IMG/VR virus record: IMGVR_UViG_3300032236_001613 | Location: 124,001-188,000 of that record | DNA length: 64,000 nt | Reading direction: 5' to 3' (one strand) | Shown: positions 1,779-50,400 of the stretch, in pieces | How positions within the stretch are numbered: position 1 is the stretch's first letter | Layout of the letters: each line of letters starts with the position of its first letter | Translations under genes and position numbers: made by a program | The notes under the pieces: model-generated | The model's database searches: none | Seen by the model: the letters and a program-made list of their open reading frames with translations, nothing else | Told to the model about the DNA's origin: nothing

Positions 1779-3059
1779 ATGTTACTACGTGAATTATTTG
1801 AAGACTCAAAAAACCCCGATTTAATAGAAATTTTTCGAAAATTTTTTCCTTTAGCTATGAAAGAAATTGGGCTAAAGGATTTACCCAAAATTGAATTAGT
1901 TGACCGTGTTCAAGACAGAGTTCAACCAACGTTTGGTAAATTTGTTAATAATACCAATACAATATATTTAGGAATTCTAAATCGTCATCCTTTAGATATA
2001 TTACGTACACTAGCACACGAGCTAGTACATTATAAACAAAATACAGAACATCGATTAGATGCTACTAGCGGGCATACTGGAAGCCCTGCTGAGAACGAAG
2101 CACACGAAATTGCCGGCATTGTAATGCGTCATTTTAATAAAATGCATCCAGAATATTTTGATGATCTTCCGGTAATGACCGAAGGATGGCAAGACGATCT
2201 TAAGAAAAGATCGAGACAAGTAGGGTTAGGCTTAACTGCCGCTGCAGGATTCATAGGCGGATTGAAATCTCATGATTATTTCTATCCTCCTTATCAATAT
2301 ACACAGCAGCAAGCTCAAGACACACAGGACGAACCATTGATCCCTTCTGATGATAATGATGATTATTACCAAGGTCCGACTAGCGTTGATAAGAATCAAG
2401 GACCTGAACTCGAAATACCAAAATTATCAAACGCAGAAATTCCAGCAGTAAAAGAACCTGAAATACAAGCTCCATTAAATCAATCATACTTGAAGAAGTA
2501 TGTTCAAGCTCAAAAAATGGTAAAACTTCCTAACGCTTTAGAAAATGATCTTAAAAACGATGCTATGAAGCAAGGAATAGTAGGGTTAGAATTGGATCAA
2601 TTTTTAGGACAGTGGGCGCACGAAAGTGGTAACTTTACACAGTTTGACGAAATGTATAGAAATGGCGAAGCTTTTAAGAGTAAAAAATGGTTCATTGATC
2701 ATTACTGGAAAAACGACAGAATAAGACATGCATTAGGTAATAAACATCCTAATGATGCTTGGATGTATAGAGGAAGAGGCTTTTGCCAACTTACAGGAAG
2801 AGGCAACTACGAACAAGCCGGAAAAGCATTAGGTATTGACCTAACTAATAAACCTAATTTAGCAGCTAGTCCTAAGTATATGGGTGCTATTGCTATTTGG
2901 TATTGGAAAAATCGTGTAGCAACTAAAGTTGATGCAGAACATATGGGCGATACTACCGCAGTAACTAGAGCAATAAATCACGGCGAAAGTAAAGAAAATA
3001 TACAAAAAAGACATACCTGGGTACAATGGTTTAGAAAAATGTTTGGACGCGGTGCTTAA
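1779..3059 (+). CDS. Fusion of an HExxH metallopeptidase-like domain and a GH19 (chitinase/lysozyme-like) endolysin domain
   Basis: N-terminal LRTLAHELVH; C-terminal FLGQWAHESGNF, YRGRGFCQLTGRGNY and AIWYWK are GH19 hallmarks. Confidence 0.8.
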   Translation: MLLRELFEDSKNPDLIEIFRKFFPLAMKEIGLKDLPKIELVDRVQDRVQPTFGKFVNNTNTIYLGILNRHPLDILRTLAHELVHYKQNTEHRLDATSGHTGSPAENEAHEIAGIVMRHFNKMHPEYFDDLPVMTEGWQDDLKKRSRQVGLGLTAAAGFIGGLKSHDYFYPPYQYTQQQAQDTQDEPLIPSDDNDDYYQGPTSVDKNQGPELEIPKLSNAEIPAVKEPEIQAPLNQSYLKKYVQAQKMVKLPNALENDLKNDAMKQGIVGLELDQFLGQWAHESGNFTQFDEMYRNGEAFKSKKWFIDHYWKNDRIRHALGNKHPNDAWMYRGRGFCQLTGRGNYEQAGKALGIDLTNKPNLAASPKYMGAIAIWYWKNRVATKVDAEHMGDTTAVTRAINHGESKENIQKRHTWVQWFRKMFGRGA

Positions 3060-3078
3060 ACATATCGGAGGCTAACGT

Positions 3079-5268
3079 ATGAGCCACGATTCTGTTCTCA
3101 GCATTGACAATTTTGAACAGCTCTTAAACGAGGATAATTTCTCTAATCTATTATCATCTTTATCTGGAAAAGATAATTTAGAAGCTTCCTTACAAAAATT
3201 ATCCGAACAAAAAAGAAAAGTTGAAATAAAAAAAACAGTTACTATTTCGGTTCCTGTAACAAAAGTAGCTGTTGTTAAGAAAACTAAATCACGAGTATTA
3301 AGAAAAGAGATTACAATTCTTTTAGCAACTGCATTATATGCGACTAGTTGTGTTGATGTTAAAGAACCTAGATTAATTAATCAAATAGAATTTAAAAATA
3401 ATACTCAAGAAGTAACAAATAATGCTGTTTCAAAAGATCTGCCTATTATAACTACTACCATAAAAAAAGAAACAGTTAGCAATAAACTTGCTAGATTCTT
3501 TTTAACTGGAAATATTCAAGAACCTAATAAAGAAAAAGTTAATTTAGAAGCCGAAAGTCCTAGTGTTGATGATGATGACGATGATAGAATTAAACAACCT
3601 GTAGTTGTATTTGATACTAGACCTGCTAGTGAATTGTTAGCAGAAGCTAAAGCACTTTTATTAGAAAAATCAGGAAATTATGATCAAGCTATTGCTAATT
3701 TAAAATCTATCATTTCAACACAACCTGCAGAATCTGCAAAAGAATCTCACGAAATGTTAGGTTATGCTTATGAAAAATCAAAAAACTTTAACAAAGCTAT
3801 GAAAGAATATCAACGTTATCTAGCAATCTATACTGAAGATAACGAAGATAGAACTCGTGTAAGACAACGTTTAATGAGTTTAGAAATTTTGGAACCTGCA
3901 GGATTTTCAATAGGAAAAATCGATAAAACAAAAGCACCGCATCAGGGAGATAGTTTTGAACTTAACGGAAATACATCTGATTATCTATATGTAACAAAAA
4001 ATAATAATGTAGGTGTTGGCCAAAAATCACAACAGATCAATTTAATATCGGGTGTACAAGCTTCTTTAAAAGAAACACACAACGAATATGAGTTATCTGC
4101 CCGTGTACGTTTTTCTCAGGTGAAAGATTTTAGTGAGTCTGCTGGCAACAGAACTAATTTGTCAAATGCTTACGTAGATTTTGCTAATACATTTAAAGGT
4201 TATAACATAAGAGCAGGCAGACAAAACAGTGTAGCCGGGTCAGTAGGAAGATTTGACGGTGTTTCGGGAGGCCTCAAAGTTTCAGATGATTTAAAAATAT
4301 CAGTTGCAGTTGGTAATCCAGTATTAGGCTCTAATTCAAAATCAAAAAGAGTTTTTGAAGGAATGGAAGTTGATTGGAGAATTAATAATGATTGGGGTAC
4401 TGGACTATATGTTAATCGAGGAGTAGCAGATGGGTTACTAGAAAGAATGGCTATAGGCGGTAGTCTAGATTATAGAACAAACCAAACTAGTCTATTATTA
4501 AGATCTGAATATGACACTGTTTATCATAGCTTAAACTTGATTTCTTTTCAAAGCAATTACTATGCAAAAAACTTTGATGCTTTTGCTATTTTTGAAAGAC
4601 GACGTACTCCGATGCCATATGGAGACGTTGCACTTACTTTAGGCGAATACTCTTTAGATCGACAGTATTATAATTCTATCGGTGATCTATTATTAAAATC
4701 AGGGCTAACATCTAATGAAATTTACAATTATATTTCACAATCTACTCCTATTGCTACATCAGCAGTTGTTGGGGTAAGAAAAAAGATTTCTAAAAATTGG
4801 GAAGTAACTGCAGATGCACAGTCAACTAATTTATCTACAATACCAGGTTTTAATTTAAATCCTAATTTTGAACCTATTCCTATACAAGTAGGAGATAAAC
4901 AAAATTATTCATTAACTGCTCATTTAAAAGGAGAAAATATACTATTACCTAATAATAGTATAGAATTTGCTGCCAATGATTCTACCGGTGGTAGGAAATC
5001 TTCATATATTACTTTTGCAGATAATTTTAAATTTGGTGATAAAAATAGAAATAGTATTTCGACTGTATTAAGAATCGATACTGTCAACGAAGATTATGGA
5101 AAAATAGATACATTATCTGCTATTTTAAGAGGGTTTTATTCTATTACCGACCATACAGTTTTAGAAGGACAATATTCACAATCGTTGACAAAGACTAGAT
5201 CATCCTTATATAATAATCCTACTGATAAAAATCAAAATTTTTATATCGGTTTTAGACATGATTTTTAA
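3079..5268 (+). CDS. TPR-containing outer-membrane beta-barrel (porin-like) protein
   Basis: GGAGG SD before the ATG; TPR-like helices (GNYDQAIANLK, EMLGYAYEKSKNFNKAMKEYQRYL); C-terminal ~450 aa of amphipathic beta-strands ending FYIGFRHDF (BAM beta-signal with terminal Phe). Confidence 0.75.
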   Translation: MSHDSVLSIDNFEQLLNEDNFSNLLSSLSGKDNLEASLQKLSEQKRKVEIKKTVTISVPVTKVAVVKKTKSRVLRKEITILLATALYATSCVDVKEPRLINQIEFKNNTQEVTNNAVSKDLPIITTTIKKETVSNKLARFFLTGNIQEPNKEKVNLEAESPSVDDDDDDRIKQPVVVFDTRPASELLAEAKALLLEKSGNYDQAIANLKSIISTQPAESAKESHEMLGYAYEKSKNFNKAMKEYQRYLAIYTEDNEDRTRVRQRLMSLEILEPAGFSIGKIDKTKAPHQGDSFELNGNTSDYLYVTKNNNVGVGQKSQQINLISGVQASLKETHNEYELSARVRFSQVKDFSESAGNRTNLSNAYVDFANTFKGYNIRAGRQNSVAGSVGRFDGVSGGLKVSDDLKISVAVGNPVLGSNSKSKRVFEGMEVDWRINNDWGTGLYVNRGVADGLLERMAIGGSLDYRTNQTSLLLRSEYDTVYHSLNLISFQSNYYAKNFDAFAIFERRRTPMPYGDVALTLGEYSLDRQYYNSIGDLLLKSGLTSNEIYNYISQSTPIATSAVVGVRKKISKNWEVTADAQSTNLSTIPGFNLNPNFEPIPIQVGDKQNYSLTAHLKGENILLPNNSIEFAANDSTGGRKSSYITFADNFKFGDKNRNSISTVLRIDTVNEDYGKIDTLSAILRGFYSITDHTVLEGQYSQSLTKTRSSLYNNPTDKNQNFYIGFRHDF

Positions 5269-5788
5269 AACATTAGCAGTATTACTACTTTTATTAATTT
5301 TTCCAAAAGCATTAGGAGCCGAATGCACTGCCTATGAAAAATTGCATCCTCGTTGGCCGTTAACTGGTGCGCATTTAAGTACCGGTAAGTGTACTAGTTG
5401 TGGTATGTGTCATATACCCGAAGGTTCGGCAGTTTGGATAGGCACACCTAGAACATGTATTGCCTGTCATAATGGCGACCCTAGCCGTATGACAATAGGT
5501 CGTAGTGCTAGACATCTGCCTACATTATTATTAGATTGTGCAGGATGCCATAATACCATGGCATTTACAAATAAAACAGGTATAACACAGTTAATGATAC
5601 ACACTACAGGCTACCCTACTGTTATGTGTAAAGGGTGCCATAATGGCATGTATACCAGCTATGGCGCACAAGGAATGTCAAACGATCATCCTAAAACGGT
5701 GACTAGGAATGGTGTAAAAATAATAGTAGCTGCTGTTGACTGTAATTATAGTGGTTGCCATAATCCTAACAGTAACTCCTTCAATTAA
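5258..5788 (+). CDS. Secreted multiheme cytochrome c (4 CxxCH plus 1 CxxxxCH)
   Basis: Signal peptide MIFKTLAVLLLLLIFPKALGA; CGMCH, CIACH, CAGCH, CKGCH and CNYSGCH; overlaps the porin stop. Confidence 0.9.
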   Translation: MIFKTLAVLLLLLIFPKALGAECTAYEKLHPRWPLTGAHLSTGKCTSCGMCHIPEGSAVWIGTPRTCIACHNGDPSRMTIGRSARHLPTLLLDCAGCHNTMAFTNKTGITQLMIHTTGYPTVMCKGCHNGMYTSYGAQGMSNDHPKTVTRNGVKIIVAAVDCNYSGCHNPNSNSFN

Positions 5789-5802
5789 GAAAGCAGTTTT
5801 TT

Positions 5803-5810
5803 GCTAAATA
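5803..5810 (+). promoter_or_regulatory. Late-promoter-like GCTAAATA
   Basis: TAAATA core in the intergenic gap about 30 nt before GTG 5840. Confidence 0.35.
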
Positions 5811-5839
5811 GCAGTAGAAACCGCAAGGAGTTTTCTACC

Positions 5840-6649
5840 GTGCAAAAACTAAAAACACTTTTATCGTCTATGGCTATAACGATAGCATTAGCATTATCAT
5901 ATATTGCTGTTCCTGCTACAGTTGCAGCAGGTTCAATGATAATGTTTACTGATACCGCAGATGCTGCTGAATGTACGTTATATGAAACAATTCACCCAAA
6001 TTTTCCATTAACCGGTTCGCACTTGTCAACTGGTAAATGCAGCACTTGTGCTAGCTGTCACGCAGGTGGCATTTATTTAGGCACACCAAAAATCTGTGCT
6101 ACTTGCCATAACGGTAGCCCAACAGGACAAATTTCTGCACAAACTATCGGTCGTTCAGCAAAACATATTCCGATTAATACAACTAACTGCGATTCTTGCC
6201 ATAATACAACGTCATTTACTGCTTCATGGGCTATGAATCATGCTAGTGTAAGTGGGCAAAGATGCGATAGTTGCCATAATGGATCATTTACTGCATATGG
6301 TGCTATGGGTAAACCTAATGATCACATTCCAACGACAGCTGATTGCGGTACTTGCCATGTTACTAAAGATTCAAGCACACACAGTAACGATGCATGGAGT
6401 ATGTCACTTGCTGATATTCACAGAGGTATAACAACCGGTTGTGTTAGCTGTCATGATGGCGCTCACCACCCAGCTCTAGGTAAAATTGATTATGCTCCAG
6501 GGCATCCACAAACAAGCGATGCTTGCGAAACTTGCCACAGTATTAATAACACATTTAAGTGCGCATCATTAATTGAAGATAAAATGCTTCAACGAATGAT
6601 GAAGCAGAGTTTGGCATCTCTTATTGGAATACGTCTTAAATCAATCTAA
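5840..6649 (+). CDS. Secreted heptaheme cytochrome c (7 CxxCH)
   Basis: AAGGAG SD at 5825-5830 supports a GTG start at 5840; hydrophobic signal region; CASCH, CATCH, CDSCH, CDSCH, CGTCH, CVSCH, CETCH with intervening distal His residues (e.g. GKPNDHIPT). Confidence 0.92.
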   Translation: MQKLKTLLSSMAITIALALSYIAVPATVAAGSMIMFTDTADAAECTLYETIHPNFPLTGSHLSTGKCSTCASCHAGGIYLGTPKICATCHNGSPTGQISAQTIGRSAKHIPINTTNCDSCHNTTSFTASWAMNHASVSGQRCDSCHNGSFTAYGAMGKPNDHIPTTADCGTCHVTKDSSTHSNDAWSMSLADIHRGITTGCVSCHDGAHHPALGKIDYAPGHPQTSDACETCHSINNTFKCASLIEDKMLQRMMKQSLASLIGIRLKSI

Positions 6650-6665
6650 AGTTTAAGGACAAAAT

Positions 6666-6689
6666 AAAACGCCCCGAACGGGGCGTTTT
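6666..6689. terminator. Bidirectional intrinsic terminator
   Basis: AAAACGCCCC-GAAC-GGGGCGTTTT between convergent genes. Confidence 0.85.
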
Positions 6690-6732
6690 ACTATCACGAA
6701 GTAATTTATTTTTATTGTAGGCTATGCCACTT

Positions 6733-14939: not shown

Positions 14940-17273
14940 ATGGTTACAGTCGTTAAAAGAGATGGGTCTCGAGTTCCCTTAGATATTTCCAAAATTCAAA
15001 GACAAGTAGCACACGGATGCCGTGGAATTGACGGGGTAAGCCCGTCAATGATTGAGATTAAAGCTCAATTAGAATTGCACGATGGCATGAGTACTCAAAC
15101 AATCGACGAACTACTATTAAAAGCTATGGTTAACCTCATTGACGAAAATGAGAACCCAGAAATTAATAATACTAACTATCAGTACGTAGCTGGTAGACAG
15201 CGTGTTAGCATGCTTCGTAAAGAAGTCTACGGCGAATATGAGCCGCCAAAGTTATATAGTATTGTTAAAACAAACGTCTCTGCCGGAATGTACACGTCTG
15301 ATTTATTATCTTGGTATACTGAAGACGAATGGAACATTATTGATCTTTTTATTGATCATTCCAAAGACGAAAATTATACATTTGCTGCGATTGAACAGCT
15401 AGCAGAAAAATATCTAGTTCAAAATAGAGCTACTGGTAAGATCTATGAAACTCCCCAAGTAAGATATGCAATTGCTGCTGCTACAGCATTTCATAACGAA
15501 GATAAAGAAATTAGACTAAAATTAGTAAAGGAATACTACGAATGTGCATCTGAAGGACATTTTACTCTTGCTACTCCTGTTCTTGCTGGTCTTGGTACTA
15601 CCACTAAACAGTTTTCTAGTTGTGTGCTTATTGCTAGCGATGATACTTTAGATAGCATCTTTGCTAGCGGCGAAATGATGGCCAAATATGCTAGTAAACG
15701 TGCCGGTATTGGTCTCGAACTTGGTCGTATTAGGCCTGTTGGCGCTCCTATACGCAATGGAGAAATTAAACATACTGGATTAGTTCCATTCTTAAAGAAA
15801 TGGTTTGCTGACTTACGTAGTTGCAGTCAAGGCGGAATTCGTAATGCGTCTTGTACAGTAACATTTCCTATTTGGCATGCACAATTTGAAGATCTAATTG
15901 TATTAAAGAACAATCAAGGCACAGAAGAAACTCGTGTACGTCAAATGGATTATTCTGTGGTTGTTTCTGCGCTCTTTTGGCGCCGCTATAAGAATGGTGA
16001 AAATATTACATTATTCGATCCTCACGAGGTTCCTGACTTATACGAAGCTTACTACCGAGATAGCAAAGAATTTGAAAAATTGTATCTTAAGTATGAACAA
16101 GATAAAAATAAGAAAAAGAAAGTATTATCTTCAGAAGAAGTTTTTAAAAACGGTATTCTTAAAGAACGTACTGATACTGGACGAATCTACCTTGTTAATA
16201 TTGATAACGTGATCAGTCAGGGTCCATTCAATTCTAAAACTGATCCTATCTATCAAAGTAATCTTTGTCAAGAAATTTTATTACCGACTCGCCCATTCCA
16301 ACGTATCAGCGACGAGAATGGTCGCATCGCTCTCTGCACATTGGGGTCCATTAATTGGGGTGCGTTCCGTAATCCCGCCGATATGCGCAAAGCTTGTCGT
16401 GTACTAGTACGCAGTCTAAGCAACTTACTTAACTATCAAGATTTTCTTAGTGTACAAAGCCGTTTAGCAAATAAAGAATTTGAACCTCTTGGTGTAGGAA
16501 TTACTAATTTGGCATTTTGGCATGCTAGAAAGAATCTAAAATACGGAGAAGCAGAAGCATTAGCAGAAGTTAAACGTTGGATGGAACATCAGGCATTTTA
16601 TCTCACAGAAATGAGTGTAGAACTTGCAAGAGATCGAGGCGCATGTGAGCGCAGTCAATATACCTATTACGGCCAAGGAATATTTCCATGGGAACGACGT
16701 AATACTAATGTCAACGAATTAACTAATTTTGATCCTAGTGCTAATCTTGACTGGGAAGGATTGCGAGAGAATCTAAAGAAGTACGGCATTCGTAATGCTA
16801 CACTTATGGCGATTGCACCAGTCGAATCTAGCAGCGTTGTACTTAACAGTACAAATGGTATTGAAATGCCTATGGAGCTAATTAGTGTTAAAGAAAGCAA
16901 AGCCGGATCATTTGTACAAGTTGTTCCTGAGTATAAACGTTATAAAAATCGTTATCAATTAATGTGGGATCAAAAAGATTGTGTAGAATACCTTAAAACC
17001 GCTGCTGTATTAGCTGTGTACATTGATCAAAGTATCAGCACAAATACTTTCTACAATCCTGCGTATTTTGCTGAAGGTAAAATTCCTGCTACACTAATTG
17101 CTAAAAATCTAATGTTAGCGTATCGATGGGGTTTGAAAACAATCTATTATAGTTTGATAAACAAGGTCGGCAGTAAAACTATGATTAATAGCCAAAGCGA
17201 TAGACTTTCAGTATCTGAACCTGTTACAATCTACGATGACTCAGAAGATGACTGCTTGGCCTGTAAACTTTAA
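14940..17273 (+). CDS. nrdA: Ribonucleotide reductase class Ia alpha subunit with ATP cone
   Basis: VVKRDG ATP cone; FSSC, SNLCQE and LCTL catalytic Cys residues; YY pair; C-terminal CLAC. Confidence 0.97.
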   Translation: MVTVVKRDGSRVPLDISKIQRQVAHGCRGIDGVSPSMIEIKAQLELHDGMSTQTIDELLLKAMVNLIDENENPEINNTNYQYVAGRQRVSMLRKEVYGEYEPPKLYSIVKTNVSAGMYTSDLLSWYTEDEWNIIDLFIDHSKDENYTFAAIEQLAEKYLVQNRATGKIYETPQVRYAIAAATAFHNEDKEIRLKLVKEYYECASEGHFTLATPVLAGLGTTTKQFSSCVLIASDDTLDSIFASGEMMAKYASKRAGIGLELGRIRPVGAPIRNGEIKHTGLVPFLKKWFADLRSCSQGGIRNASCTVTFPIWHAQFEDLIVLKNNQGTEETRVRQMDYSVVVSALFWRRYKNGENITLFDPHEVPDLYEAYYRDSKEFEKLYLKYEQDKNKKKKVLSSEEVFKNGILKERTDTGRIYLVNIDNVISQGPFNSKTDPIYQSNLCQEILLPTRPFQRISDENGRIALCTLGSINWGAFRNPADMRKACRVLVRSLSNLLNYQDFLSVQSRLANKEFEPLGVGITNLAFWHARKNLKYGEAEALAEVKRWMEHQAFYLTEMSVELARDRGACERSQYTYYGQGIFPWERRNTNVNELTNFDPSANLDWEGLRENLKKYGIRNATLMAIAPVESSSVVLNSTNGIEMPMELISVKESKAGSFVQVVPEYKRYKNRYQLMWDQKDCVEYLKTAAVLAVYIDQSISTNTFYNPAYFAEGKIPATLIAKNLMLAYRWGLKTIYYSLINKVGSKTMINSQSDRLSVSEPVTIYDDSEDDCLACKL

Positions 17274-17283
17274 GGTGTGAACT

Positions 17284-18384
17284 ATGAGTAAATTGCAATA
17301 TGATTTCTCCAATCCTACTAACTATCTAAAACGTACAATGTTTTTAGATCCTGCAGGCCCGGTTACTGTACAAAGGTTTGAGGAAGTAAAATATCCTAAG
17401 CTACAAAAGTACGAAGAGTTAGCCCGCGGATTCTTTTGGGTTCCTGAGGAGATTAGCCTCACCAAAGATAAAATGGATCACAAGGAGGCCAGTGATGCAG
17501 TTAAACATATTTTCACAAGTAATCTACTTCGTCAAACAGCTCTCGACAGTATTCAAGGGCGTGCCCCTTTCCAGGTATTTGGACCAGTCACGTCTATACC
17601 GGAATTAGAAGCACTAACACTTACATGGAGCTTTTTCGAAACATCTATCCATAGTAAGAGCTATAGTCATATTATCCGTAATATCTACGGAGTTCCTAAA
17701 GAAGAATTTAATAAGATTCACGATACTAAAGAAATCGCCGGCATGGCTGCTGGTATTGGAAGATATTATGAAGAGCTGCATGTACTTAACATGCGCCGAG
17801 AACTAGGAGAAGACATTCCAGTTTACGATCATAAGAAGTCTATTTGGCTTGCACTACATGCAAGTTATGCTCTAGAAGCCCTACGCTTTATGGTCAGTTT
17901 TGCTACTAGCCTTGCTATGGTTGAAAATAAAATCTTTATTGGCAACGGCAATATTATTAGTCTTATTTTGCAGGATGAAATTTTACACAGCGAATGGACT
18001 GCATGGTTAATTAATAACGTCACTAAAGATGATCCTGACTTTGTTCAAATCGAGCAAGATTGCCGCGAAGAAGTATATGCATTGTATATGGAAGTTATAC
18101 AAGAAGAAAAATCTTGGGCAGACTATCTGTTCCGTAAAGGAGTAGTAATCGGGCTTAATGCTAATATTCTCAAAGACTTTGTAGATTATACAGCATATAC
18201 TAAACTAAAGGATATCGGAATTAAGTATTTGGAAGACCATCCTAAGTCTACGCCGATTCCATGGTTTAATAAACATGTAAATATTAATAAGAAACAGTCA
18301 GCGTTACAAGAAACCGAGTCGACAAATTATGTTATCGGTGTAATGAGTGACGCTGTTACACATGATGAATTACCAGACCTATAA
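17284..18384 (+). CDS. nrdB: Ribonucleotide reductase class Ia beta subunit
   Basis: FFWVPEEI, LDSIQGR, IHSKSY (radical Tyr), LEALRF, DEILH, QETE..NY. Confidence 0.96.
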   Translation: MSKLQYDFSNPTNYLKRTMFLDPAGPVTVQRFEEVKYPKLQKYEELARGFFWVPEEISLTKDKMDHKEASDAVKHIFTSNLLRQTALDSIQGRAPFQVFGPVTSIPELEALTLTWSFFETSIHSKSYSHIIRNIYGVPKEEFNKIHDTKEIAGMAAGIGRYYEELHVLNMRRELGEDIPVYDHKKSIWLALHASYALEALRFMVSFATSLAMVENKIFIGNGNIISLILQDEILHSEWTAWLINNVTKDDPDFVQIEQDCREEVYALYMEVIQEEKSWADYLFRKGVVIGLNANILKDFVDYTAYTKLKDIGIKYLEDHPKSTPIPWFNKHVNINKKQSALQETESTNYVIGVMSDAVTHDELPDL

Positions 18385-30914: not shown

Positions 30915-32318
30915 ATGATGAATATGTTTGCAGAAGCAGTTAAAGAAGTACAAATCGAAACTCGTACCATTAACGGTATGAAAACTTTCGATTCCAGCAA
31001 GAGTCGTCTCGTTGACTTGTTCTTTGCAATCGGTGCAAGCCGTGGAAAAGACTTAAGCGCCGAATTCCACCGTGCTCTTGCTGAAGATAAAACGCTAGCA
31101 CTTCGCTTGCTCATGTGGGCTCGCGATGTTCGCGGTGGGGCAGGCGAGCGAGATGTTGTTCGCACTATCTTGCTTAGTCTGGAAAAGAAAGATCCAGATG
31201 TGTTGAAGCGTGTGCTTCCGCACCTAGCTGAGTTCGGCCGCTGGGATGACTTGTTGATTTTCGAGCATGATCCGGAAATCAAGAGCATGGCGTTTGATCT
31301 CATCCACGCAGCTCTTAAGGCCGGCAACGGTCTTTGTGCTAAGTGGATGCCTCGTAAGGGCGAGAAGGCGGCAGAGTTGCGTAATGCACTTGGTATGAGT
31401 CCTAAGACTTATCGCAAAACTCTAGTCAATTTGACTAAGGTTGTTGAGCAGAATATGTGTGCTAACGACTGGACTAACATTAACTACAACCACGTTCCTA
31501 GCGTGGCTGCTAGTCGTTACCAGAAAGCGTTTAAGAAGCACGACCCAGAGGGTTATGAAGCGTATGCTTCTAAACTCGAAAAGGGTGAAGCTAAGATTAA
31601 TGCTGGTGCGGTTTATCCGTATGACATTATCAAGGCACACAATGCAGGCGGTAATGTAAAGGTTGTTACTGCGCAATGGGAAGCATTGCCTAACTACATC
31701 GGTGATGAGTTAATCCTTCCGATGGTGGACGTTTCAGGCTCTATGTCTGTGCCAATTGGTAGCAACAAGAACCTGCAATGTATCGACGTTGCAGTTAGCT
31801 TAGGTTTATATCTTGCTGATAAGAATACCGGTCCGTTTAAGGATATGTTCTTAACTTTCTCGAGTGATCCGGAGCTACAAATTCTTAAGGGCGACCTCAT
31901 TAAGAAAATTGCACAGCTACAAAAAGCTGATTGGGCTATGAGCACCGATCTTAATAAAGCATTTGAGTTAATTCTCAATTACGCTGTTAAGGGCAAAGTT
32001 GCAACTAAGGACATGCCTCAGTATGTGCTCATCTTGTCAGATATGGAGTTTAATCAGTGCACACGACACAATGACAGTGCTATGCAAATGATCGTACGTA
32101 AGTACGAAGCTGCCGGCTACGAGGTTCCGAATATTATTTTCTGGAATCTAGCAGCACGTAGCGGAAACGTTCCAGTTAAGTATGACAAGAAAGGTACTGC
32201 ATTAATTTCCGGATTCAGCCCGGCAATCATGACTTCGGTTCTAGCAGCTAAGAGTATTACTCCGATAGATGTGATGCTTGAGACTCTAAACAAGCCACGT
32301 TACGCTGTTATCAGCTAA
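30915..32318 (+). CDS. TROVE-like/vWA domain protein (DUF2828 / Ro60-like)
   Basis: WARDVRGGAGER, GRWDDLL, AKWMPR, VPSVA; C-terminal vWA with the MIDAS motif DVSGSM and SDMEF. Confidence 0.85.
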   Translation: MMNMFAEAVKEVQIETRTINGMKTFDSSKSRLVDLFFAIGASRGKDLSAEFHRALAEDKTLALRLLMWARDVRGGAGERDVVRTILLSLEKKDPDVLKRVLPHLAEFGRWDDLLIFEHDPEIKSMAFDLIHAALKAGNGLCAKWMPRKGEKAAELRNALGMSPKTYRKTLVNLTKVVEQNMCANDWTNINYNHVPSVAASRYQKAFKKHDPEGYEAYASKLEKGEAKINAGAVYPYDIIKAHNAGGNVKVVTAQWEALPNYIGDELILPMVDVSGSMSVPIGSNKNLQCIDVAVSLGLYLADKNTGPFKDMFLTFSSDPELQILKGDLIKKIAQLQKADWAMSTDLNKAFELILNYAVKGKVATKDMPQYVLILSDMEFNQCTRHNDSAMQMIVRKYEAAGYEVPNIIFWNLAARSGNVPVKYDKKGTALISGFSPAIMTSVLAAKSITPIDVMLETLNKPRYAVIS

Positions 32319-33344: not shown

Positions 33345-33929
33345 ATGACCAAATATAACATTGACGATGTTATTGATAACGCACTTTTAGGATGGGGTGA
33401 TACTGCACAACACGGTATAACATTATTAGCATTAGTATGCTCAGTTAATGCTAAAAAAATTTTAGAGCTCGGAGTCCGAGGCGGAGGAACAACATATCCG
33501 TTGTTAAAAGCTGCTAGCATTACTAATTCTGTACTAACGTCAGTAGATATCGCCGATGCTGGATACCGTCCTCCGTCGGATCTTTTTCCTTATTGGAATT
33601 TTGTTGTACAAGATGCAATAGAATTTTTAACAAATACAACCGAATCATATGATATTATTTTCGTTGATGATCTACACACAACAGATCACTTATATAATGA
33701 ATTGAAACTTATAGATAAAATTTCTACAAAAAAAACATTAATCTTATTACATGATTTAATGTGGGGGGGTTCACACCCTGAATATAATACTGCAGTCATG
33801 ACTCATGGTGAGTTTGAAGGTACCGGTCCTCACGGAGGATTAATGAAATTTTTATCAGAATATCCAGACTACGAATATGCAACAATCCCTATCAATCACG
33901 GACTAACTTTATTAAGGAAAACTAAATGA
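33345..33929 (+). CDS. Class I SAM-dependent methyltransferase
   Basis: ILELGVRGG, YDIIFVDDLH, LILLHD. Confidence 0.85.
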   Translation: MTKYNIDDVIDNALLGWGDTAQHGITLLALVCSVNAKKILELGVRGGGTTYPLLKAASITNSVLTSVDIADAGYRPPSDLFPYWNFVVQDAIEFLTNTTESYDIIFVDDLHTTDHLYNELKLIDKISTKKTLILLHDLMWGGSHPEYNTAVMTHGEFEGTGPHGGLMKFLSEYPDYEYATIPINHGLTLLRKTK

Positions 33930-34744
33930 AATATTTAATTTTAGGTTCTGCTGGGCAAGTTGGAGCAGAATTAACAAAATTTTTAAAAAATAAAGGTCAT
34001 GAAGTAACTACTTTTGATATTGTAGATTCCAGTCATGAAGATTTAAGAATACCCGGTTCCGTAGATGATTATATAAAAAAATCAGATTTTGTTTATTTTT
34101 TAGCATTTGATGTAGGTGGTTCTAGATATCTACAAAAATATCAAAATACATACGAGTTTGTTGATAATAATATGAGAATATTAACTAATACGTTTGAATG
34201 CCTACAAAAATATAAAACTCCTTTTATATTTGCATCCAGTCAGATGTCTAATATGAACTATTCATCATATGGGGTTTTAAAATCGATAGGCGAAAAATAT
34301 ACTAAAATTTTAAACGGAATAGTTGTTAAATTCTGGAACGTCTATGGCGTTGAGCATGATTTAAATAAATCACACGTTATTACCGATTTCATCCTTTCTG
34401 CAAAAGATAAAAATTGCATTAATATGTTAACCGATGGTCAAGAAGAAAGACAAATGCTACATGCCGAAGATTGTTCAGAATGTTTAGAAATTTTATCTCA
34501 AAATTATAATACTATTTCAAGAGATAAAGAGTTACACATTACTTCATTTGAATGGTCTAAAATTATCGATATTGCAAATATTGTTGCTGAGATCTTTCCA
34601 GGAACTAAAGTTAATCCGGCTAACACTCAAGATAACGTTCAACTGAATAAAAAGAACGAACCAGATACTTATATATTAAATTACTGGCAACCTAAAATTA
34701 AAATCAAAGATGGTATTAAAAAAATTACAGAGGTATATAATTAA
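33926..34744 (+). CDS. NAD-dependent epimerase/dehydratase
   Basis: GSAGQVG, YGVLK (YxxxK), WNVYG. Confidence 0.85.
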   Translation: MKYLILGSAGQVGAELTKFLKNKGHEVTTFDIVDSSHEDLRIPGSVDDYIKKSDFVYFLAFDVGGSRYLQKYQNTYEFVDNNMRILTNTFECLQKYKTPFIFASSQMSNMNYSSYGVLKSIGEKYTKILNGIVVKFWNVYGVEHDLNKSHVITDFILSAKDKNCINMLTDGQEERQMLHAEDCSECLEILSQNYNTISRDKELHITSFEWSKIIDIANIVAEIFPGTKVNPANTQDNVQLNKKNEPDTYILNYWQPKIKIKDGIKKITEVYN

Positions 34745-35712
34745 TGAATAAGTCAGCAGTAGTGCTAGGGGCAGGTGGATTTATTGGAAACCATTTAGTT
34801 AATAGATTAAAAAAAGAAGGATACTGGGTTAGAGGAGTAGACTTAAAATATAACGAATACCAACAAACCTCTGCTGATGAATTTATAATTGGCGATCTTA
34901 AAGATAACTCTATTGTTGAAAAGGTTATGTATAAGGAAACTCCATTTGATGAAGTATATCAACTAGCTGCAGATATGGGCGGTGCTGGCTATATTTTTAG
35001 TGGCGATAATGACGCTAATGTTATGTATAACTCAGCTCTTATAAATTTAAATGTAGTACATCATTCAACAAGATACAATGTAGGCAAAGTTTTTTATAGC
35101 AGCAGTGCATGTATGTACCCTGAACATAATCAGATCGATCCAAACAATCCAAATTGCGAGGAAAGTAGTGCTTACCCAGCAAACCCAGACAGCGAATACG
35201 GATGGGAAAAACTTTTTAGTGAGAGATTATACTTAGCATATCATAGAAACTATAAACTAAATGTAAGAATAGCAAGATTTCATAACATTTTTGGACCATA
35301 CGGTGCTTGGAATAATGGAAAAGAAAAATCGCCAGCAGCAATTTGCCGAAAGATATCTGAGGCAAAAGACGGCGGTGAAATTGAAGTATGGGGCGACGGC
35401 GAACAAACAAGAAGCTTCCTCTATATCGACGAATGCTTAGACGGTGTTCGTAAATTAATGGATAATGATTTTCTCGGTCCAGTTAACATTGGATCAGACG
35501 AAATGGTAACTATTAACAAATTAGTTAGTATTGTGTCCAACATTGCAAATAAAGAAGTAAAAATAAAACATGTGCCGGGTCCGTTAGGCGTTCGCGGAAG
35601 AAATTCCGATAATAAACTAATTAAGGAAAAATTAGGCTGGGCGCCAACACGCCCTCTAAAGGAAGGTCTTATCGAAACTTATAACTGGATCAATCAGCAA
35701 GTTAACACATAG
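34744..35712 (+). CDS. NAD-dependent epimerase, GDP-mannose 3,5-epimerase-like
   Basis: GAGGFIG, LAADMGGAGYI, SSSACMYP, YGWEK, GVRGRNSDN. Confidence 0.88.
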   Translation: MNKSAVVLGAGGFIGNHLVNRLKKEGYWVRGVDLKYNEYQQTSADEFIIGDLKDNSIVEKVMYKETPFDEVYQLAADMGGAGYIFSGDNDANVMYNSALINLNVVHHSTRYNVGKVFYSSSACMYPEHNQIDPNNPNCEESSAYPANPDSEYGWEKLFSERLYLAYHRNYKLNVRIARFHNIFGPYGAWNNGKEKSPAAICRKISEAKDGGEIEVWGDGEQTRSFLYIDECLDGVRKLMDNDFLGPVNIGSDEMVTINKLVSIVSNIANKEVKIKHVPGPLGVRGRNSDNKLIKEKLGWAPTRPLKEGLIETYNWINQQVNT

Positions 35713-39526: not shown

Positions 39527-40065
39527 GTTTAAAAGATTTAACTAAAGATAGCCATACTGCTGCTGAAAAAACAAAATTCATGAAGGCAGTATTTAAAGGT
39601 ACTATGCCTTTGAATGTATGGGCAGATTGGACATATCAAAAGAGTTTATTTTATAATGCTATTGAAAGCTGCGCCGACGAATTAGATATTTTAAAAGATA
39701 TTCCAAATATTAAAAGAACTTTTTTGTTGCTTAAAGATTATAAAGAAATGGTAGCTGAGCACGTAACTCCCGCATATCGAAAAGTTACTTTAGATTATTA
39801 TCAATATATTATGAGTCTTTATCCTGATCGCGATCGTGTAATTGCACATCTTTATACATGGCATATGGGAGATTTGCACGGCGGACAAATGATTAAAAAG
39901 ATTTTGCCAGGTAGTCATAGTAATTTAGAATTTGTAGACTCTGCAACAACAATCTCTAATGTTAGAATGCTCTTAGACGACCGGCTAGCTAAAGAAGCTA
40001 ATATGGCATTTCATTGGGCAATTAGATTAATGGAAGACTATGAACCCTGGCTTGCCGGCGAATAA
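39523..40065 (+). CDS. Heme oxygenase
   Basis: LKDLTKDSHTAAE (proximal His) and HLYTWHMGDLHGGQMI distal helix. Confidence 0.9.
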   Translation: MSLKDLTKDSHTAAEKTKFMKAVFKGTMPLNVWADWTYQKSLFYNAIESCADELDILKDIPNIKRTFLLLKDYKEMVAEHVTPAYRKVTLDYYQYIMSLYPDRDRVIAHLYTWHMGDLHGGQMIKKILPGSHSNLEFVDSATTISNVRMLLDDRLAKEANMAFHWAIRLMEDYEPWLAGE

Positions 40066-40714
40066 AGTTATCGACTTTGCCGAAAAGTTTATTAGACGTC
40101 TAGAACAAAATTCTGACTGTATTAAAGAAGAACATCCGACATTAATTTGGCGTGATTACGTTTTTCATAGCGATACTTTTAGACGTGCTCACGTTAATAT
40201 AGTTGATGCCAGAGATACTAGAGGATTGTATCTTTTTCATTGTTGTATTTTTCCAAAGTTAAATGATACTAGTCCTATATTCGGGTTGGATATTATTGCC
40301 GGGGAAACTAAAATTAGCGGAGCCTTTCACGATTTTTCAAAAACAGTAGATCCTAATCATCCTATGATGTCATGGTTTGAAAATATTGTTAAAACATTAA
40401 GTTGGCGAAGGCCAAGAGAACTTCCAGAGTGGGCACAATCAATTTTTAGTCCTGCAATAATTGCTGCCGGTGCAATAAACACTGAAGAAGAAATTGATCA
40501 ATTAATTACATTCTCTCTAAATAGTTTAGATTATTATCTCGATAATGTTGGATTAACTACATTTCCAACCGGCAACTTTTCAAAAGAGCAAAATTTCTAC
40601 TGTCAGCAGCAAAAATTAAATCCTCATAATGCTCGTACTATGCAACATCTTGGACTCACTGCAGAAGAAGCAAACTATTTTGTCCAAAATGTCATGTTTC
40701 CCGAAGTTAAGTAA
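40040..40714 (+). CDS. Ferredoxin-dependent bilin reductase (PcyA/PcyX-like)
   Basis: FRRAH, FHCCIFP, PIFGLDII, RELPEWAQSIFSP, QNFYCQQQKLNPH; adjacent to the heme oxygenase. Confidence 0.88.
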   Translation: MNPGLPANKVIDFAEKFIRRLEQNSDCIKEEHPTLIWRDYVFHSDTFRRAHVNIVDARDTRGLYLFHCCIFPKLNDTSPIFGLDIIAGETKISGAFHDFSKTVDPNHPMMSWFENIVKTLSWRRPRELPEWAQSIFSPAIIAAGAINTEEEIDQLITFSLNSLDYYLDNVGLTTFPTGNFSKEQNFYCQQQKLNPHNARTMQHLGLTAEEANYFVQNVMFPEVK

Positions 40715-41244: not shown

Positions 41245-42165
41245 ATGCGATTACTGACTTTACTTGCTAGCACATTAGTGCTAACAGGCTGCGCAACCAT
41301 GCAGAGATTTGATCAACTATCGAAAATAAAATACGATCCTACTCCAATGGCAGATACTATGCAAAGAGAGTTTGACCGCATGCCTGCACCTAAGAACGGA
41401 AAAATTACTGTAGCCATTTACAATTTCCAAGATAAAACTGGACAACGTAAAACAGTACCAGGCGTAGCTAGTTTCTCTACAGCAGTAACGCAAGGTGCTG
41501 ATGCATTTTTAATACGTGCACTTCAAGAAGTAGGACACGGAGAATGGTTTGATGTTGTTGAAAGAAGTAATATTGACGACTTAACTAAAGAAAGATTAAT
41601 TATTAAACAGATGCGAGATGCATACGAAGGTAAAGATGCAGAAAAACTTATGCCATTAACCTTTGCGGGAATCATATTAGAAGGCGGTATTGTAGGATAC
41701 GATAGTAGTTTAGAATCCGGCGGTTATGCTAACAATTGGTTAGGTACTGGTAAACAAACACAATACAGTAAAGATATTGTAACTATAAGCTTACGAGCAG
41801 TATCGGTAAACACTGGCAAAGTATTAGCATCTGTTAATGTAACTAAGATAGTATTAAGTACTGCTGATAGCTTCGCAGTATTAAAGATGAAGCATGATGG
41901 AACAGCACCTTTTGAATTAGAAGGTGGAATAACAATGAACGAAGCGCCTACTATTGCTGTAAAGACTACAATAGAAGCAGCAGTAATAGAATTAATCAAA
42001 GAAGGCGAGCGTAAATCTATTTGGGATTATAAAACGACTGCACAATCTCAAATACCACAATCTGCACCGTTGGAAGGAACACCAACGATACCTGTAGGAA
42101 TGAATAAAACACCTAAGGTACCTGCGGATGTTGCAGTCAAAACTGGCGACATAAAAAACTTTTAA
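41245..42165 (+). CDS. csgG: Curli secretion channel CsgG-like lipoprotein
   Basis: Lipobox LTGC; VAIYNFQDKTGQRK, FSTAVTQG, WFDVVER, EGGIVGYD. Confidence 0.9.
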   Translation: MRLLTLLASTLVLTGCATMQRFDQLSKIKYDPTPMADTMQREFDRMPAPKNGKITVAIYNFQDKTGQRKTVPGVASFSTAVTQGADAFLIRALQEVGHGEWFDVVERSNIDDLTKERLIIKQMRDAYEGKDAEKLMPLTFAGIILEGGIVGYDSSLESGGYANNWLGTGKQTQYSKDIVTISLRAVSVNTGKVLASVNVTKIVLSTADSFAVLKMKHDGTAPFELEGGITMNEAPTIAVKTTIEAAVIELIKEGERKSIWDYKTTAQSQIPQSAPLEGTPTIPVGMNKTPKVPADVAVKTGDIKNF

Positions 42166-42174
42166 GGAGCAGAA

Positions 42175-43089
42175 ATGAAAAAGTTAAACACAATTCTTGC
42201 AAGCTTTGTGGCCGCAACGTTATTCGGTGCAGCAGCATATGCAGGAGACAACACAATTTATATTAACCAATCTGGTAATAATACTAATGTAAACATTACA
42301 CAAGATGGTGCTAGCAACGTTGTACAAGGCATTTCGAATTCAAATCCGGATGCTTTACAAAACGCAGCAATCGTTAAAGGTAATAATAACATTGTTAATA
42401 TTAGCCAAATTGGCACAGGCGATACATTAAACTTTGGTGTGCAAACTAGCACTGGAACAAAATTAATCGGGAATAGCTTTAGTTACAGCGTGACCGGCAA
42501 TAATGCTAACGCTATTATCAATAGCAACAACGACGGGTTAGGCATTAGTGCTAACAACACTATTTCTGTTAATCAAACAGGCGATTCAGCATACACCAAT
42601 ATCAACATGCTAGGCGGAGGTAACTCGTTTACTGCTGTAACTGCAGGCGGCAATGGAAATATGATTTCTGCTGTTATTAACGGTACAAATAATGTTGACA
42701 CAGTTAGCATGGTCGGTGGTGCAAGCAATAGCTTTAGCTTAGGTCAAGGTAACGCAACATCTCAAACTATGAACGGTACAGTTAATGTATCAACTAATGG
42801 TGCAACCGATAACGTTACTATTAGCCAATTTGGCGGAGCAGTAGGTGACAGTGTTACAGTCGGCGGCTACAACTCAGTAGGACTTACTACAGTTGGAGCA
42901 TTCAACGGATCTGGTAACACAATGGTTATTGCTCAAAGCGGTGTTTATGACAACGCATTGACACTTGGCGGTAACGGTAGTAGTAATGTTTTCAATGTAA
43001 CTCAATCAGCTTTGGGAGGCAACAACCTTGCTAATATCCAAAGCAATGGAAGTAGCAATACATTTAACATAACACAAACACACCGTTGA
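42175..43089 (+). CDS. Curlin-repeat (CsgA/CsgB-like) secreted protein
   Basis: Signal peptide; repeated N-x-x-x-I/V-x-Q-x-G units; Asn/Gly/Gln/Ser-rich. Confidence 0.75.
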   Translation: MKKLNTILASFVAATLFGAAAYAGDNTIYINQSGNNTNVNITQDGASNVVQGISNSNPDALQNAAIVKGNNNIVNISQIGTGDTLNFGVQTSTGTKLIGNSFSYSVTGNNANAIINSNNDGLGISANNTISVNQTGDSAYTNINMLGGGNSFTAVTAGGNGNMISAVINGTNNVDTVSMVGGASNSFSLGQGNATSQTMNGTVNVSTNGATDNVTISQFGGAVGDSVTVGGYNSVGLTTVGAFNGSGNTMVIAQSGVYDNALTLGGNGSSNVFNVTQSALGGNNLANIQSNGSSNTFNITQTHR

Positions 43090-43090
43090 T

Positions 43091-49543: not shown

Positions 49544-49568
49544 TGGAAATCTCTCGTTTATGTACCGA

Positions 49569-49576
49569 TATTTATA
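49569..49576 (-). promoter_or_regulatory. T4-like late promoter TATAAATA (minus strand)
   Basis: TATTTATA on the plus strand, upstream of the 49543 start. Confidence 0.5.
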
Positions 49577-49608
49577 TACGTATATATTAAATATTTGTTA
49601 CTTTGGAA

Positions 49609-49890
49609 TCAATCTCTTCTAGCATCATTTTTGCCATCGGCTCTAGCAATACGGTCAACATCGGGTCTTAAGCCAAGAGCATTTGAAACAATTGTGTCTA
49701 TTCTAATAACATCATGATTCATAGTTTTAACACGATTATCGAGAGCAGTAATTATACCTTTCATACCATTAACGCTACTAGTAACTCCAGCTAAGATAAA
49801 TTTTAATGTTAGAAATACAAAATAACCACCGGCACACGCTGCTGCTATCGGAAAACCTAACTGTGCTACTAAATTAAAAAATTGATCCAT
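49609..49890 (-). CDS. Small membrane protein (paralog of 47966-48289)
   Basis: LVAQLGFPIAAACAGGY...DNRVKTMNHDVIRI; AGGAG SD. Confidence 0.6.
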   Translation of the reverse strand: MDQFFNLVAQLGFPIAAACAGGYFVFLTLKFILAGVTSSVNGMKGIITALDNRVKTMNHDVIRIDTIVSNALGLRPDVDRIARADGKNDARRD

Positions 49891-50398: not shown

Positions 50399-50400
50399 TT

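Follow-up and report, generated by a model that had tools for sequence, protein, structure and literature searches.

[quoted passage not shown] The MtrCAB, MtoAB and PioAB complexes, in which a barrel is encoded next to multi-heme cytochromes with about 30 residues per heme, are the only class where electron transfer through a barrel has been shown experimentally (PMC9900912). The PCC3 gene clusters of Proteobacteria (He et al. 2017, PMC5566968), surveyed in Gallionellaceae as well (PMC9900912), are proposed trans-outer-membrane electron conduits, although their function remains unverified (PMC8788666; 10.1101/2025.02.27.639646), and in Sideroxydans ES-1 the PCC3 genes were not induced by Fe(II) (PMC8788666). 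Among viruses, large freshwater amoC-phages (155-338 kb) carry host-derived respiratory or redox genes, including a NapC/NirT multi-heme cytochrome (bioRxiv 10.64898/2026.06.18.733297). In turn, Borgs and jumbo extrachromosomal elements of Methanoperedens carry multi-heme cytochromes thought to boost the extracellular electron transfer of the host (PMC9605863, PMC11208441, PMC13444090).

The locus described here lies about 127 kb inside IMGVR_UViG_3300032236_001613, a 328-kb IMG/VR genome of a freshwater phage, of which a stretch of 64,000 nucleotides (the window) was analyzed. Three abutting, co-oriented genes encode a TPR and predicted beta-barrel protein, a pentaheme cytochrome and a heptaheme cytochrome, and end at a strong hairpin terminator that looks bidirectional (Table 1). 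All three open reading frames (ORFs) exist as described in the original prediction, with one correction, since the heptaheme gene starts at GTG 5840 and not at TTG 5801; a Shine-Dalgarno sequence precedes the revised start, homologs begin there too, and the protein is therefore 269 aa long and not 282. No other ORF segment of at least 150 aa in the window has any CxxCH motif. No ccm-type WWD motif was found in the window either, in agreement with the original prediction that maturation genes are absent from it.

Table 1. Features of the module and its surroundings, in window coordinates
Feature	Coordinates	Strand	Details
Upstream neighbor (context, not part of the module)	1779..3059	+	426 aa, C-terminal GH19 lysin domain; 19 nt from the barrel gene
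Shine-Dalgarno sequence of the barrel gene	3065..3069	+	GGAGG, 9 nt upstream of the ATG
Predicted outer-membrane barrel protein	3079..5268	+	729 aa; N-terminal extension, one hydrophobic segment, disordered linker, TPR domain, predicted barrel
Hydrophobic segment	3310..3360	+	Residues 78-94, ending ...ATSC; follows a 77-residue extension
TPR domain	3625..3891	+	Residues 183-271, five helices
Predicted beta-barrel	3949..5262	+	Residues 291-728, 22 strands
Helical insert	4621..4743	+	Residues 515-555, between strands 13 and 14; model helices 515-520, 534-540 and 545-555
C-terminal beta-signal	5239..5265	+	FYIGFRHDF, terminal Phe; BAM recognition motif
Pentaheme c-type cytochrome	5258..5788	+	176 aa; signal peptide of about 21 residues; 4 CxxCH and 1 Cx4CH; 5 conserved distal His; start overlaps the barrel stop by 11 nt
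Shine-Dalgarno sequence of the heptaheme gene	5825..5830	+	AAGGAG
Heptaheme c-type cytochrome	5840..6649	+	269 aa from GTG; long signal peptide; 7 CxxCH; 7 conserved distal His; C-terminal amphipathic helix (model helix 261-281)
Hairpin terminator	6665..6690		GC-rich, flanked by A and T runs, between convergent genes; dG -17.9 kcal/mol, z -3.35
Class I ribonucleotide reductase genes	14940..18384		

The module is viral and not chimeric. Both of its junctions recur, with 60-98% protein identity, in four independent, diverged assemblies from different metagenomes, and the GC3 of the cassette genes (0.14-0.27) matches that of the flanking phage genes (0.21-0.27). The barrel-then-cytochrome order holds in 22 IMG/VR contigs representing several unrelated large-phage types (GC 34-56%), and the module is also carried by one assembly whose flanks look like a large phage (GCA_902730605.1), although some phage lineages carry only one cytochrome. 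The core phage clade has no member among 185,579 GTDB species genomes at the sensitivity of the scan. Only two cell-like copies were seen, one in a Methylophilaceae genome and the other in a short contig flanked by ccmH- and ccmF-like genes. Despite these copies, and the absence of a capsid or terminase gene within the window, mis-assembly of host DNA or a mislabelled cellular contig appears a remote possibility.

The gene upstream of the module matches Pfam Glyco_hydro_19 (41 bits) and the endolysin family phrog_181 (E 4.9e-32), and its adjacency is conserved in the loci L001-L004 and L077-L080 of our set. The short spacing suggests that it is probably co-transcribed with the barrel gene, so expression of the cassette may be late. 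The placement of the module among virion genes, as in the original prediction, is only partly true, since the nearby structural hints are limited to one weak virion-protein match and a tail-fibre-like ORF, and the rest of the region is accessory, comprising RNR, glycosyltransferases and an exonuclease.

The barrel protein has 47 homologs, and phmmer links it (E 1e-32 to 4e-9) to proteins whose relatives sit, in 31 of 49 proteobacterial loci, next to multi-heme cytochromes. Those loci carry the hallmarks of PCC3, namely an inner-membrane protein of about 300 aa with two Wx3Hx13H motifs, an 18-24-heme MHC (mostly 21), a 13-58-heme MHC, and a TPR-barrel ending in GYR(L/F)DF, in agreement with PMC5566968. 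The PCC3-type relationship suggested by the original prediction is thus right. However, the phage and "mini" barrels form a separate clade, with 100% SH-aLRT support on both sides, and share only about 20-29% identity with PCC3 barrels. The phage module is also reduced, with cytochromes of 5 and 7 hemes against about 21 and 10-85, with the barrel gene first, and without the 21-heme periplasmic MHC and the inner-membrane Wx3Hx13H protein. No MtrB/PioB or decaheme DmsE/MtrA family hit appeared in Pfam or NCBIfam, and the MtrCAB-type barrels have no TPR domain and probably more strands (26 in MtrB) than the 22 predicted here.

In the AlphaFold2 model of the barrel protein (pLDDT 75), the strands of the barrel have pLDDT mostly above 90 and the TPR helices 79-93. 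The TPR region was also detected by Pfam (TPR_2, TPR_14 and TPR_16, residues 185-268) and by a BamD-like NCBIfam profile (31 bits), and it is expected to be periplasmic; the same TPR and barrel layout occurs in cellular PCC3 barrels. Residues Y722, G724, R726 and D728 of the beta-signal are invariant in 16 homologs. The hydrophobic segment near the N terminus, which corresponds to helix 73-87 in the model and is conserved in the proteins P0003 and P0006-P0008 of our set, may be an internal signal or signal-anchor, although the N-terminal extension that precedes it is unexplained; other lineages have a classical N-terminal signal peptide or a Zn-ribbon plus a transmembrane segment.

Foldseek matched the model only to outer-membrane beta-barrels, including porins, ushers and AlgE, with E down to 7e-11, but the TM-scores, up to about 0.5, are low and generic. 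Since the FimD and PapC ushers rank among the top matches, TPR plus barrel is also the layout of Slam translocons, the helical insert could gate a channel, and the number of cytochromes varies from one to two between lineages, the barrel could instead be mainly an export channel or assembly platform, moving the cytochromes to the cell surface or into the medium to act as surface-bound or diffusible electron shuttles. We consider this unlikely. The TPR_Slam hit (19.6 bits) is far below its cut-off of 35.2 bits, and Slam barrels appear to have only about 14 strands. Translational coupling of the barrel and pentaheme genes, suggested by their overlap, and the strict one-barrel-per-module order fit a stoichiometric complex better.

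Both cytochromes belong to the c7 type, scoring on Pfam Cytochrome_C7 25.5 bits (pentaheme, cut-off 24.8) and 40.2 bits (heptaheme, which also matches Paired_CXXCH_1). In an alignment of 28 pentaheme sequences all five heme motifs and H30, H39, H86, H115 and H144 are invariant, whereas 14 His are invariant in 56 heptaheme sequences. There are about 31-32 residues per heme, the range cited for wire-like MHCs in PMC5566968. The best hit of the heptaheme protein is usually the N terminus of the large PCC3 MHC. The closest solved sequence for both phage cytochrome profiles is the multi-domain c7-type cytochrome 3ov0 (E 7.5e-5 and 5.7e-6), but the match is weak and partial; 3ov0 is a soluble periplasmic protein with no partner barrel, whereas the phage proteins have a distinctive conserved N-terminal ECxxYExxHP...HLSTGKCxxCxxCH module. 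The cytochrome model was poor (pLDDT 66) and found no structural match.

All three genes are under purifying selection, with dN/dS of 0.13-0.16 for the barrel, 0.04-0.12 for the pentaheme and 0.07-0.08 for the heptaheme cytochrome. A role other than redox, in which the barrel would remodel the host surface to block superinfection or mask receptors while the cytochromes are accessory or vestigial, is therefore very unlikely, since the cytochromes are under stronger selection than the barrel, and the barrel is never found without an adjacent cytochrome except where a contig ends. Nevertheless, phages do seem often to encode outer-membrane proteins for exclusion, and the same phage also carries a CsgG-type channel gene, which shows investment in envelope remodelling.

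Taken together, the three genes are best read, with a probability of roughly 55%, as a miniature trans-outer-membrane electron conduit used as a viral metabolic gene, although electron transfer is inferred and has been measured neither for this module nor for any PCC3. In the proposed mechanism, the host Sec system would export all three proteins during infection, the host cytochrome-c maturation system would attach 5 and 7 hemes to the two cytochromes, and the host BAM machinery would insert the barrel into the outer membrane, with the TPR domain remaining in the periplasm. One of the slim, bis-His-ligated heme chains, most likely the universally present heptaheme, would sit inside the barrel, an arrangement that rests only on geometric reasoning, while the pentaheme would dock on the periplasmic side, possibly at the TPR domain. 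The resulting wire of up to 12 hemes would link the periplasmic cytochrome pool of the host to electron acceptors or donors outside the cell, such as Fe(III), Mn(IV), humic substances or Fe(II). As no inner-membrane component is carried, the module would plug into periplasmic redox carriers that the host already has, for example the cytochromes that accept electrons from methanol dehydrogenase in a methylotroph. We can speculate that the benefit to the phage would be sustained respiration and energy supply in oxygen-poor water while a very large genome is replicated.

The lack of an inner-membrane link to the quinone pool also means that energy conservation is not obviously built in, and the same sequence evidence for a redox-active outer-membrane module would apply to iron or redox housekeeping. 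The module could reduce extracellular Fe(III) to supply iron to the infected cell, as the phage encodes an iron-dependent class I ribonucleotide reductase, or it could detoxify Fe(II) or reactive oxygen at the envelope. This alternative is improbable, since no iron-transport, siderophore or peroxidase genes adjoin the cassette in any of the contexts read, and twelve bis-His hemes in wire-like proteins exceed what an assimilatory reductase needs.

We found no paper describing a phage-borne porin-cytochrome module, which would be a new kind of metabolic gene for a virus. The cytochrome of the amoC-phages is an inner-membrane quinol dehydrogenase nearly identical to the gene of the host, and not an outer-membrane barrel plus a c7-type pair forming its own phage-specific clade. 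The Borgs and related elements are not established as viruses, their hosts are archaea with no outer membrane or porin, and the proteins are unrelated.

As for the host, Methylophilaceae is only a lead, supported by the closest named cellular copy of the module. Methylotenera and Methylobacter of an anoxic humic-lake hypolimnion carry putative PCCs, and EET to Fe(III) or humics was proposed for them (PMC6344600). Interestingly, three proteins encoded in the window have their only cultured-phage relatives in Methylophilales phage Melnitz and Pelagibacter phage HTVC008M.

The three co-oriented genes of the module occupy positions 3079-6649, and their features, together with those of other regions of the window mentioned below, are listed in the following table. 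The first gene encodes a protein of 729 residues and starts at an ATG preceded by GGAGG. Pfam and NCBIfam identify only TPR repeats in this protein, around residues 185-268. An AlphaFold2 model built on 47 homologs (mean pLDDT 75) consists of a disordered N-terminal region of 176 residues containing one hydrophobic helix, five TPR helices at residues 183-271, and 22 β-strands between residues 291 and 728, mostly with pLDDT above 90, with a helical insert at residues 515-555. A Foldseek comparison of the barrel model with the PDB returned only outer-membrane barrels (porins, ushers, AlgE, and OprD-type) with TM-scores reaching about 0.5, so the fold class is clear, although no specific family could be assigned. 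The last residues, FYIGFRHDF, form a conserved β-signal.

Positions of the module features and of other regions of the window and of related contigs
Feature	Position	Strand
First ORF of the window, the C-terminal quarter of a 1,361-aa protein with glycosyltransferase domains, preceded by a 1,278-aa ORF with no family match	13-1050, continuing upstream (L005:3887-7972 and L005:3-3839; L005 is the upstream locus)	
GH19 lysin gene upstream of the module	1779-3059	
Barrel protein gene	3079-5268	
N-terminal region of the barrel protein (residues 1-176)	3079-3606	
Sigma-70 consensus within the barrel gene	5185-5214	+
Pentaheme cytochrome gene	5258-5788	
AAGGAG box of the heptaheme gene	5825-5830	
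Heptaheme cytochrome gene (GTG start)	5840-6649	
Hairpin between convergent genes	6665-6690	
Class I RNR	14940-18384	
RtcB-like protein	30915-32318	
Sugar-nucleotide and glycan genes	33345-35712 and 48485-63995	
Ferredoxin-oxidoreductase-like gene	40040-40714	
Five-gene block with CsgG	41245-47628	+
GH19 lysin gene downstream of the module in a 49-kb contig	L066:12609-13298	
Short or split release factor in large-phage contigs carrying the module	L061:12575-13255, L062:8746-9297, L070:12886-13599	

The N-terminal part of the barrel protein varies between lineages and can be a plain signal peptide, an AMIN domain, or an extension of 75-100 residues (with or without a Zn-ribbon) followed by one hydrophobic segment, whereas cellular PCC3 barrels often have a SPOR domain. 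In the lineage described here, an extension of 77 residues precedes the only hydrophobic segment (...LLATALYATSC), which is followed by a linker of about 90 disordered residues. This arrangement might represent a cleaved long signal, a lipoprotein-like site, or an inner-membrane tether joined to an outer-membrane barrel; the lipoprotein interpretation was left open, since the Cys lies at about residue 91 and the motif is only near-canonical. Interestingly, a perfect sigma-70 consensus (TTGACA, 18 nt spacer, TATAAT) is found inside the 3' end of the barrel gene, 44 nt before the pentaheme start. Its -35 box is kept in the loci L001 and L002, whereas the -10 box is kept in L002 and is one base off in L001, and both are lost in the locus L077. 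This element might give extra cytochrome transcription, but coding constraint confounds the conservation.

The second gene, encoding a protein of 176 residues, overlaps the barrel stop and carries a short signal peptide, four CxxCH motifs, and one Cx4CH motif. The third gene, which follows 52 nt later, carries seven CxxCH motifs. Its listed TTG start at 5801 is mechanical, and both the AAGGAG box and the alignment of homologs place the start at the GTG, giving 269 residues. Both cytochromes pass the curated cut-off of 24.8 bits for Pfam Cytochrome_C7 (PF14522), with scores of 25.5 and 40.2 bits, and can be classified among the c7-type/class III multi-heme cytochromes (PF14522, PF02085). In 56 heptaheme homologs, 14 His residues are invariant, seven of them in CxxCH motifs and seven others, which is the number needed for bis-His ligation. 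In 28 pentaheme homologs, all five motifs and five further His residues are invariant, although the spacing of the fifth motif varies from CxxCH to Cx5CH. The pentaheme protein is a paralog of the first four heme units of the heptaheme protein, with 42% identity. The mature proteins have about 31-32 residues per heme, a range cited for wire-like cytochromes such as MtrA (PMC5566968), and the best solved-structure sequence match for both profiles is 3ov0, a multi-domain c7-type cytochrome. The AlphaFold2 model of the heptaheme protein was poor (pLDDT 66, with residues 49-116 below 50), and no match to it was found with Foldseek, so it adds nothing on the shape of the wire. A non-redox role of the module at the cell surface is considered very unlikely. 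The hairpin (dG -17.9 kcal/mol, z -3.35) closes the unit. No other ORF segment of at least 150 residues in the window contains a CxxCH motif, and no ccm-type WWD motif is present.

The window lies inside IMGVR_UViG_3300032236_001613, a 328-kb contig, and carries phage-type families that include a GH19 endolysin-like protein, a tail-fibre-like protein, class I RNR, an exonuclease, and several phage-only PHROGs. Four PHROG scans of 39 ORFs revealed no capsid, portal, or terminase gene within the window or 7 kb upstream; the viral status rests on IMG/VR membership, phage-type families, and synteny. Four other IMG/VR contigs from different metagenomes keep the same gene order on both sides of the cassette, with 37-98% protein identity gene by gene, which rules out a chimeric join. 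The third-position GC of the three genes (0.14-0.27) matches that of other genes of the phage (0.21-0.27). An artefactual origin is considered highly improbable. Against two of these relatives, dN/dS is 0.13-0.16 for the barrel, 0.04-0.12 for the pentaheme, and 0.07-0.08 for the heptaheme gene; the phage lineage therefore maintains all three as working genes. Being encoded in IMG/VR viral contigs with phage-type flanks, having cellular relatives, and being under purifying selection, the module fits the description of a phage auxiliary metabolic gene. The 19-nt gap to the upstream lysin-like gene suggests co-transcription, possibly late in infection. A GH19 lysin gene adjoins the cassette in two unrelated phage lineages, upstream here and downstream in the 49-kb contig L066, although this may be a coincidence. 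The lysin-like protein of the window also has an N-terminal region containing HExxH, with a weak metalloprotease PHROG hit.

The same module is found on clearly different large-phage backbones. These include contigs of about 200 kb, among them GCA_902730605.1, in which the module is flanked by DNA ligase, a T7-kinase-like gene, and dCMP deaminase, as well as a 369-kb contig, a 273-kb contig, and further contigs of 32-72 kb. A scan of IMG/VR with the cytochrome alignment found 22 viral contigs, in each of which, unless cut by a contig end, a barrel gene lies directly upstream of the cytochrome gene(s). The heptaheme gene is present in 21 of the 22 contigs, and the remaining one is cut at its end, whereas the smaller cytochrome has 4-6 CxxCH motifs or is absent. 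The locus GC ranges from 34% to 56%. A full-library profile search identified 1,244 clusters at 50% identity related to the barrel, about a dozen of which belong to the core phage group. In contrast, a megablast search with 25 kb of the window and tblastn searches with the barrel and the heptaheme protein found nothing in 50,697 deposited phage genomes, and no PHROG family matches any of the three proteins. The module is so far known only from metagenomes. A GTDB scan with an alignment of barrel proteins found no relative, although its two peptide patterns would also miss the Methylophilaceae copy described below, so this result excludes only close relatives.

The barrel has distant but significant relatives at about 20-28% identity (phmmer E 1e-32 to 4e-9 to P0029-P0047 among its homologs). 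A GTDB scan with the cytochrome alignment returned 49 loci, nearly all labelled Proteobacteria, and 31 of them have such a barrel within a few kb. Those loci carry an inner-membrane protein of about 300 residues with two Wx3Hx13H motifs (the motif is present in 16 of the cellular loci), an MHC of 18-24 hemes, most often 21, a second MHC of 13-58 hemes, and a TPR-barrel ending GYR(L/F)DF, sometimes with a SPOR domain. This is the PCC3 cluster as defined by He et al. 2017 (PMC5566968), comprising a porin, a periplasmic MHC with a median of 21 hemes, an extracellular MHC with a median of 34, and a five-helix inner-membrane protein with WX3HX13H motifs; Methylotenera and Bradyrhizobium are among the carriers. 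Nearly identical PCC3 clusters (L045, L046, and L053) appear in metagenome bins labelled Janthinobacterium lividum, Candidatus Planktophila lacus (an actinobacterium without an outer membrane), and an uncultured proteobacterium, which points to mis-binned contigs.

The phage module shares with PCC3 a homologous barrel with the same TPR + barrel layout, encoded directly next to multi-heme cytochrome genes. However, it has no counterpart of the periplasmic MHC with about 21 (18-27) hemes, since only proteins with 5 and 7 hemes are present, and it lacks the large extracellular MHC (10-85 hemes), with the heptaheme protein corresponding only to the N-terminal module of that cytochrome, with which it aligns best in most loci. 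No Wx3Hx13H inner-membrane protein was found in a motif scan of all six frames of the window, and none is annotated next to the cassette in the phage loci examined. In a barrel tree, the phage proteins and the PCC3 barrels form two clades, each with 100% SH-aLRT support, and the phage copy belongs to a sister clade rather than to the PCC3 clade itself. Two cell-like copies join the phage side. A Methylophilaceae genome (2.0-Mb contig) has the order heptaheme-barrel-pentaheme, with identities of 49%, 29%, and 48%, and the module lies there next to an IS200-type transposase. In the other copy, a 7-kb contig of 57% GC (L068), the 'mini' barrel, pentaheme, and heptaheme genes are flanked by ccmH- and ccmF-like genes and a fragment of a PCC3-type repeat cytochrome; it looks like an intermediate between PCC3 and the phage module. 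Cellular PCC3 clusters often have their own ccmF- and/or ccmH-like genes within a few kb (loci L017, L023, L026, L030, L031, L033, L041, L044, L050, L052, and L068). The phage module is therefore a reduced sister subfamily of PCC3 that keeps the barrel and the barrel-proximal cytochrome module, and that has lost, or never had, the long periplasmic wire and the inner-membrane protein.

No hit to an MtrB/PioB-family barrel or to a decaheme MtrA/DmsE-family cytochrome, as found in MtrAB, MtoAB, and PioAB, appeared in Pfam or NCBIfam at E up to 0.1, and the only related signal was a sub-threshold match to an MtrC/MtrF domain. The TPR_Slam profile of the surface lipoprotein assembly modulators scored 19.6 bits against a cut-off of 35.2, there was no DUF560 hit, and the predicted barrel has 22 strands. 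That the barrel might act instead as a cytochrome-export channel is considered unlikely. There was also no family hit to the TPR-barrel exopolysaccharide exporters (PgaA, BcsC, AlgK/AlgE, and PelB), with AlgE appearing only among generic barrel matches with TM-scores up to about 0.4, and the neighbouring genes encode cytochromes in every context.

By analogy with porin-cytochrome complexes, we infer that the host Sec, Ccm, and BAM systems would export, mature, and insert the three proteins, and that a slim heme chain would occupy the barrel, for which we calculate, using the standard barrel-radius formula, a Cα diameter of roughly 40 Å for 22 strands. The second cytochrome or the TPR domain would connect the chain to periplasmic carriers and, because no inner-membrane part is carried, the module would tap electrons already present in the periplasm. 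We assign this reading, a miniature trans-outer-membrane electron conduit, a probability of about 0.55. PCC3 itself has no demonstrated function: its genes were not induced by Fe(II) in Sideroxydans ES-1 (PMC8788666, where the mentions of phage concern unrelated prophages), and a 2025 preprint still calls it functionally unverified (10.1101/2025.02.27.639646). A role in iron supply or redox protection is considered unlikely. The proposed mechanism fits a suggestion made for methylotrophs of anoxic humic lakes, in which Methylotenera and Methylobacter carry putative PCC genes and might pass methanol-derived electrons to Fe(III) or humic substances (PMC6344600), although Methylophilaceae are only a lead as to the host of the phage. 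We can speculate, tentatively, that large freshwater phages carry a self-contained, minimal trans-outer-membrane heme wire that needs no inner-membrane partner and that would turn an infected cell, possibly a methylotroph not otherwise capable of it, into one exchanging electrons with iron, manganese, or humic substances outside the cell. Viral infection would then directly control extracellular redox cycling in oxygen-poor lakes and groundwater, and the phage version, a 22-strand barrel with 7 to 12 hemes, would be the smallest porin-cytochrome conduit known.

While known viral metabolic genes cover photosynthesis, carbon, sulfur, nitrogen, and ammonia oxidation, a trans-outer-membrane electron conduit would be a new class, linking phage infection to iron, manganese, and humic redox chemistry in lakes and groundwater. 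No description of a phage-borne porin-cytochrome module was found in full-text literature searches, the nearest items being a NapC/NirT-family cytochrome on amoC-phages, which is not this module, multi-heme cytochromes on archaeal Borgs and related elements, and heme-biosynthesis genes on aquatic phages. The module belongs to the PCC3 lineage by homology, but is distinct in composition, size, and carrier. With one barrel of about 440 barrel residues and cytochromes of about 155 and 226 mature residues, it is a naturally minimised form that is far easier to express, purify, and solve than cellular PCC3, whose cytochromes hold 21 to 85 hemes. It could make the question of what PCC3, widespread in Proteobacteria, does directly testable, and could also serve as a compact part for engineering electroactive strains.

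A second envelope-channel gene set is present in the same phage. The five-gene block includes a CsgG curli-type outer-membrane channel (Pfam CsgG, 139 bits), a FecR-domain protein, a PA14-domain protein, and a protein annotated in relatives as an adenylate/guanylate cyclase. Three of these proteins were searched against cultured phages and match only Methylophilales phage Melnitz and Pelagibacter phage HTVC008M, at 39-46% identity and in the same order. The large sets of sugar-nucleotide and glycan genes comprise three epimerase/dehydratase genes of phrog_540, an aminotransferase, a thiamine-diphosphate enzyme resembling acetolactate synthase, and a HAD hydrolase. Finally, the release factors encoded by the large-phage contigs L061, L062, and L070 contain PCRF/RF-1 domains, and one of these contigs (L061) also encodes SmpB.
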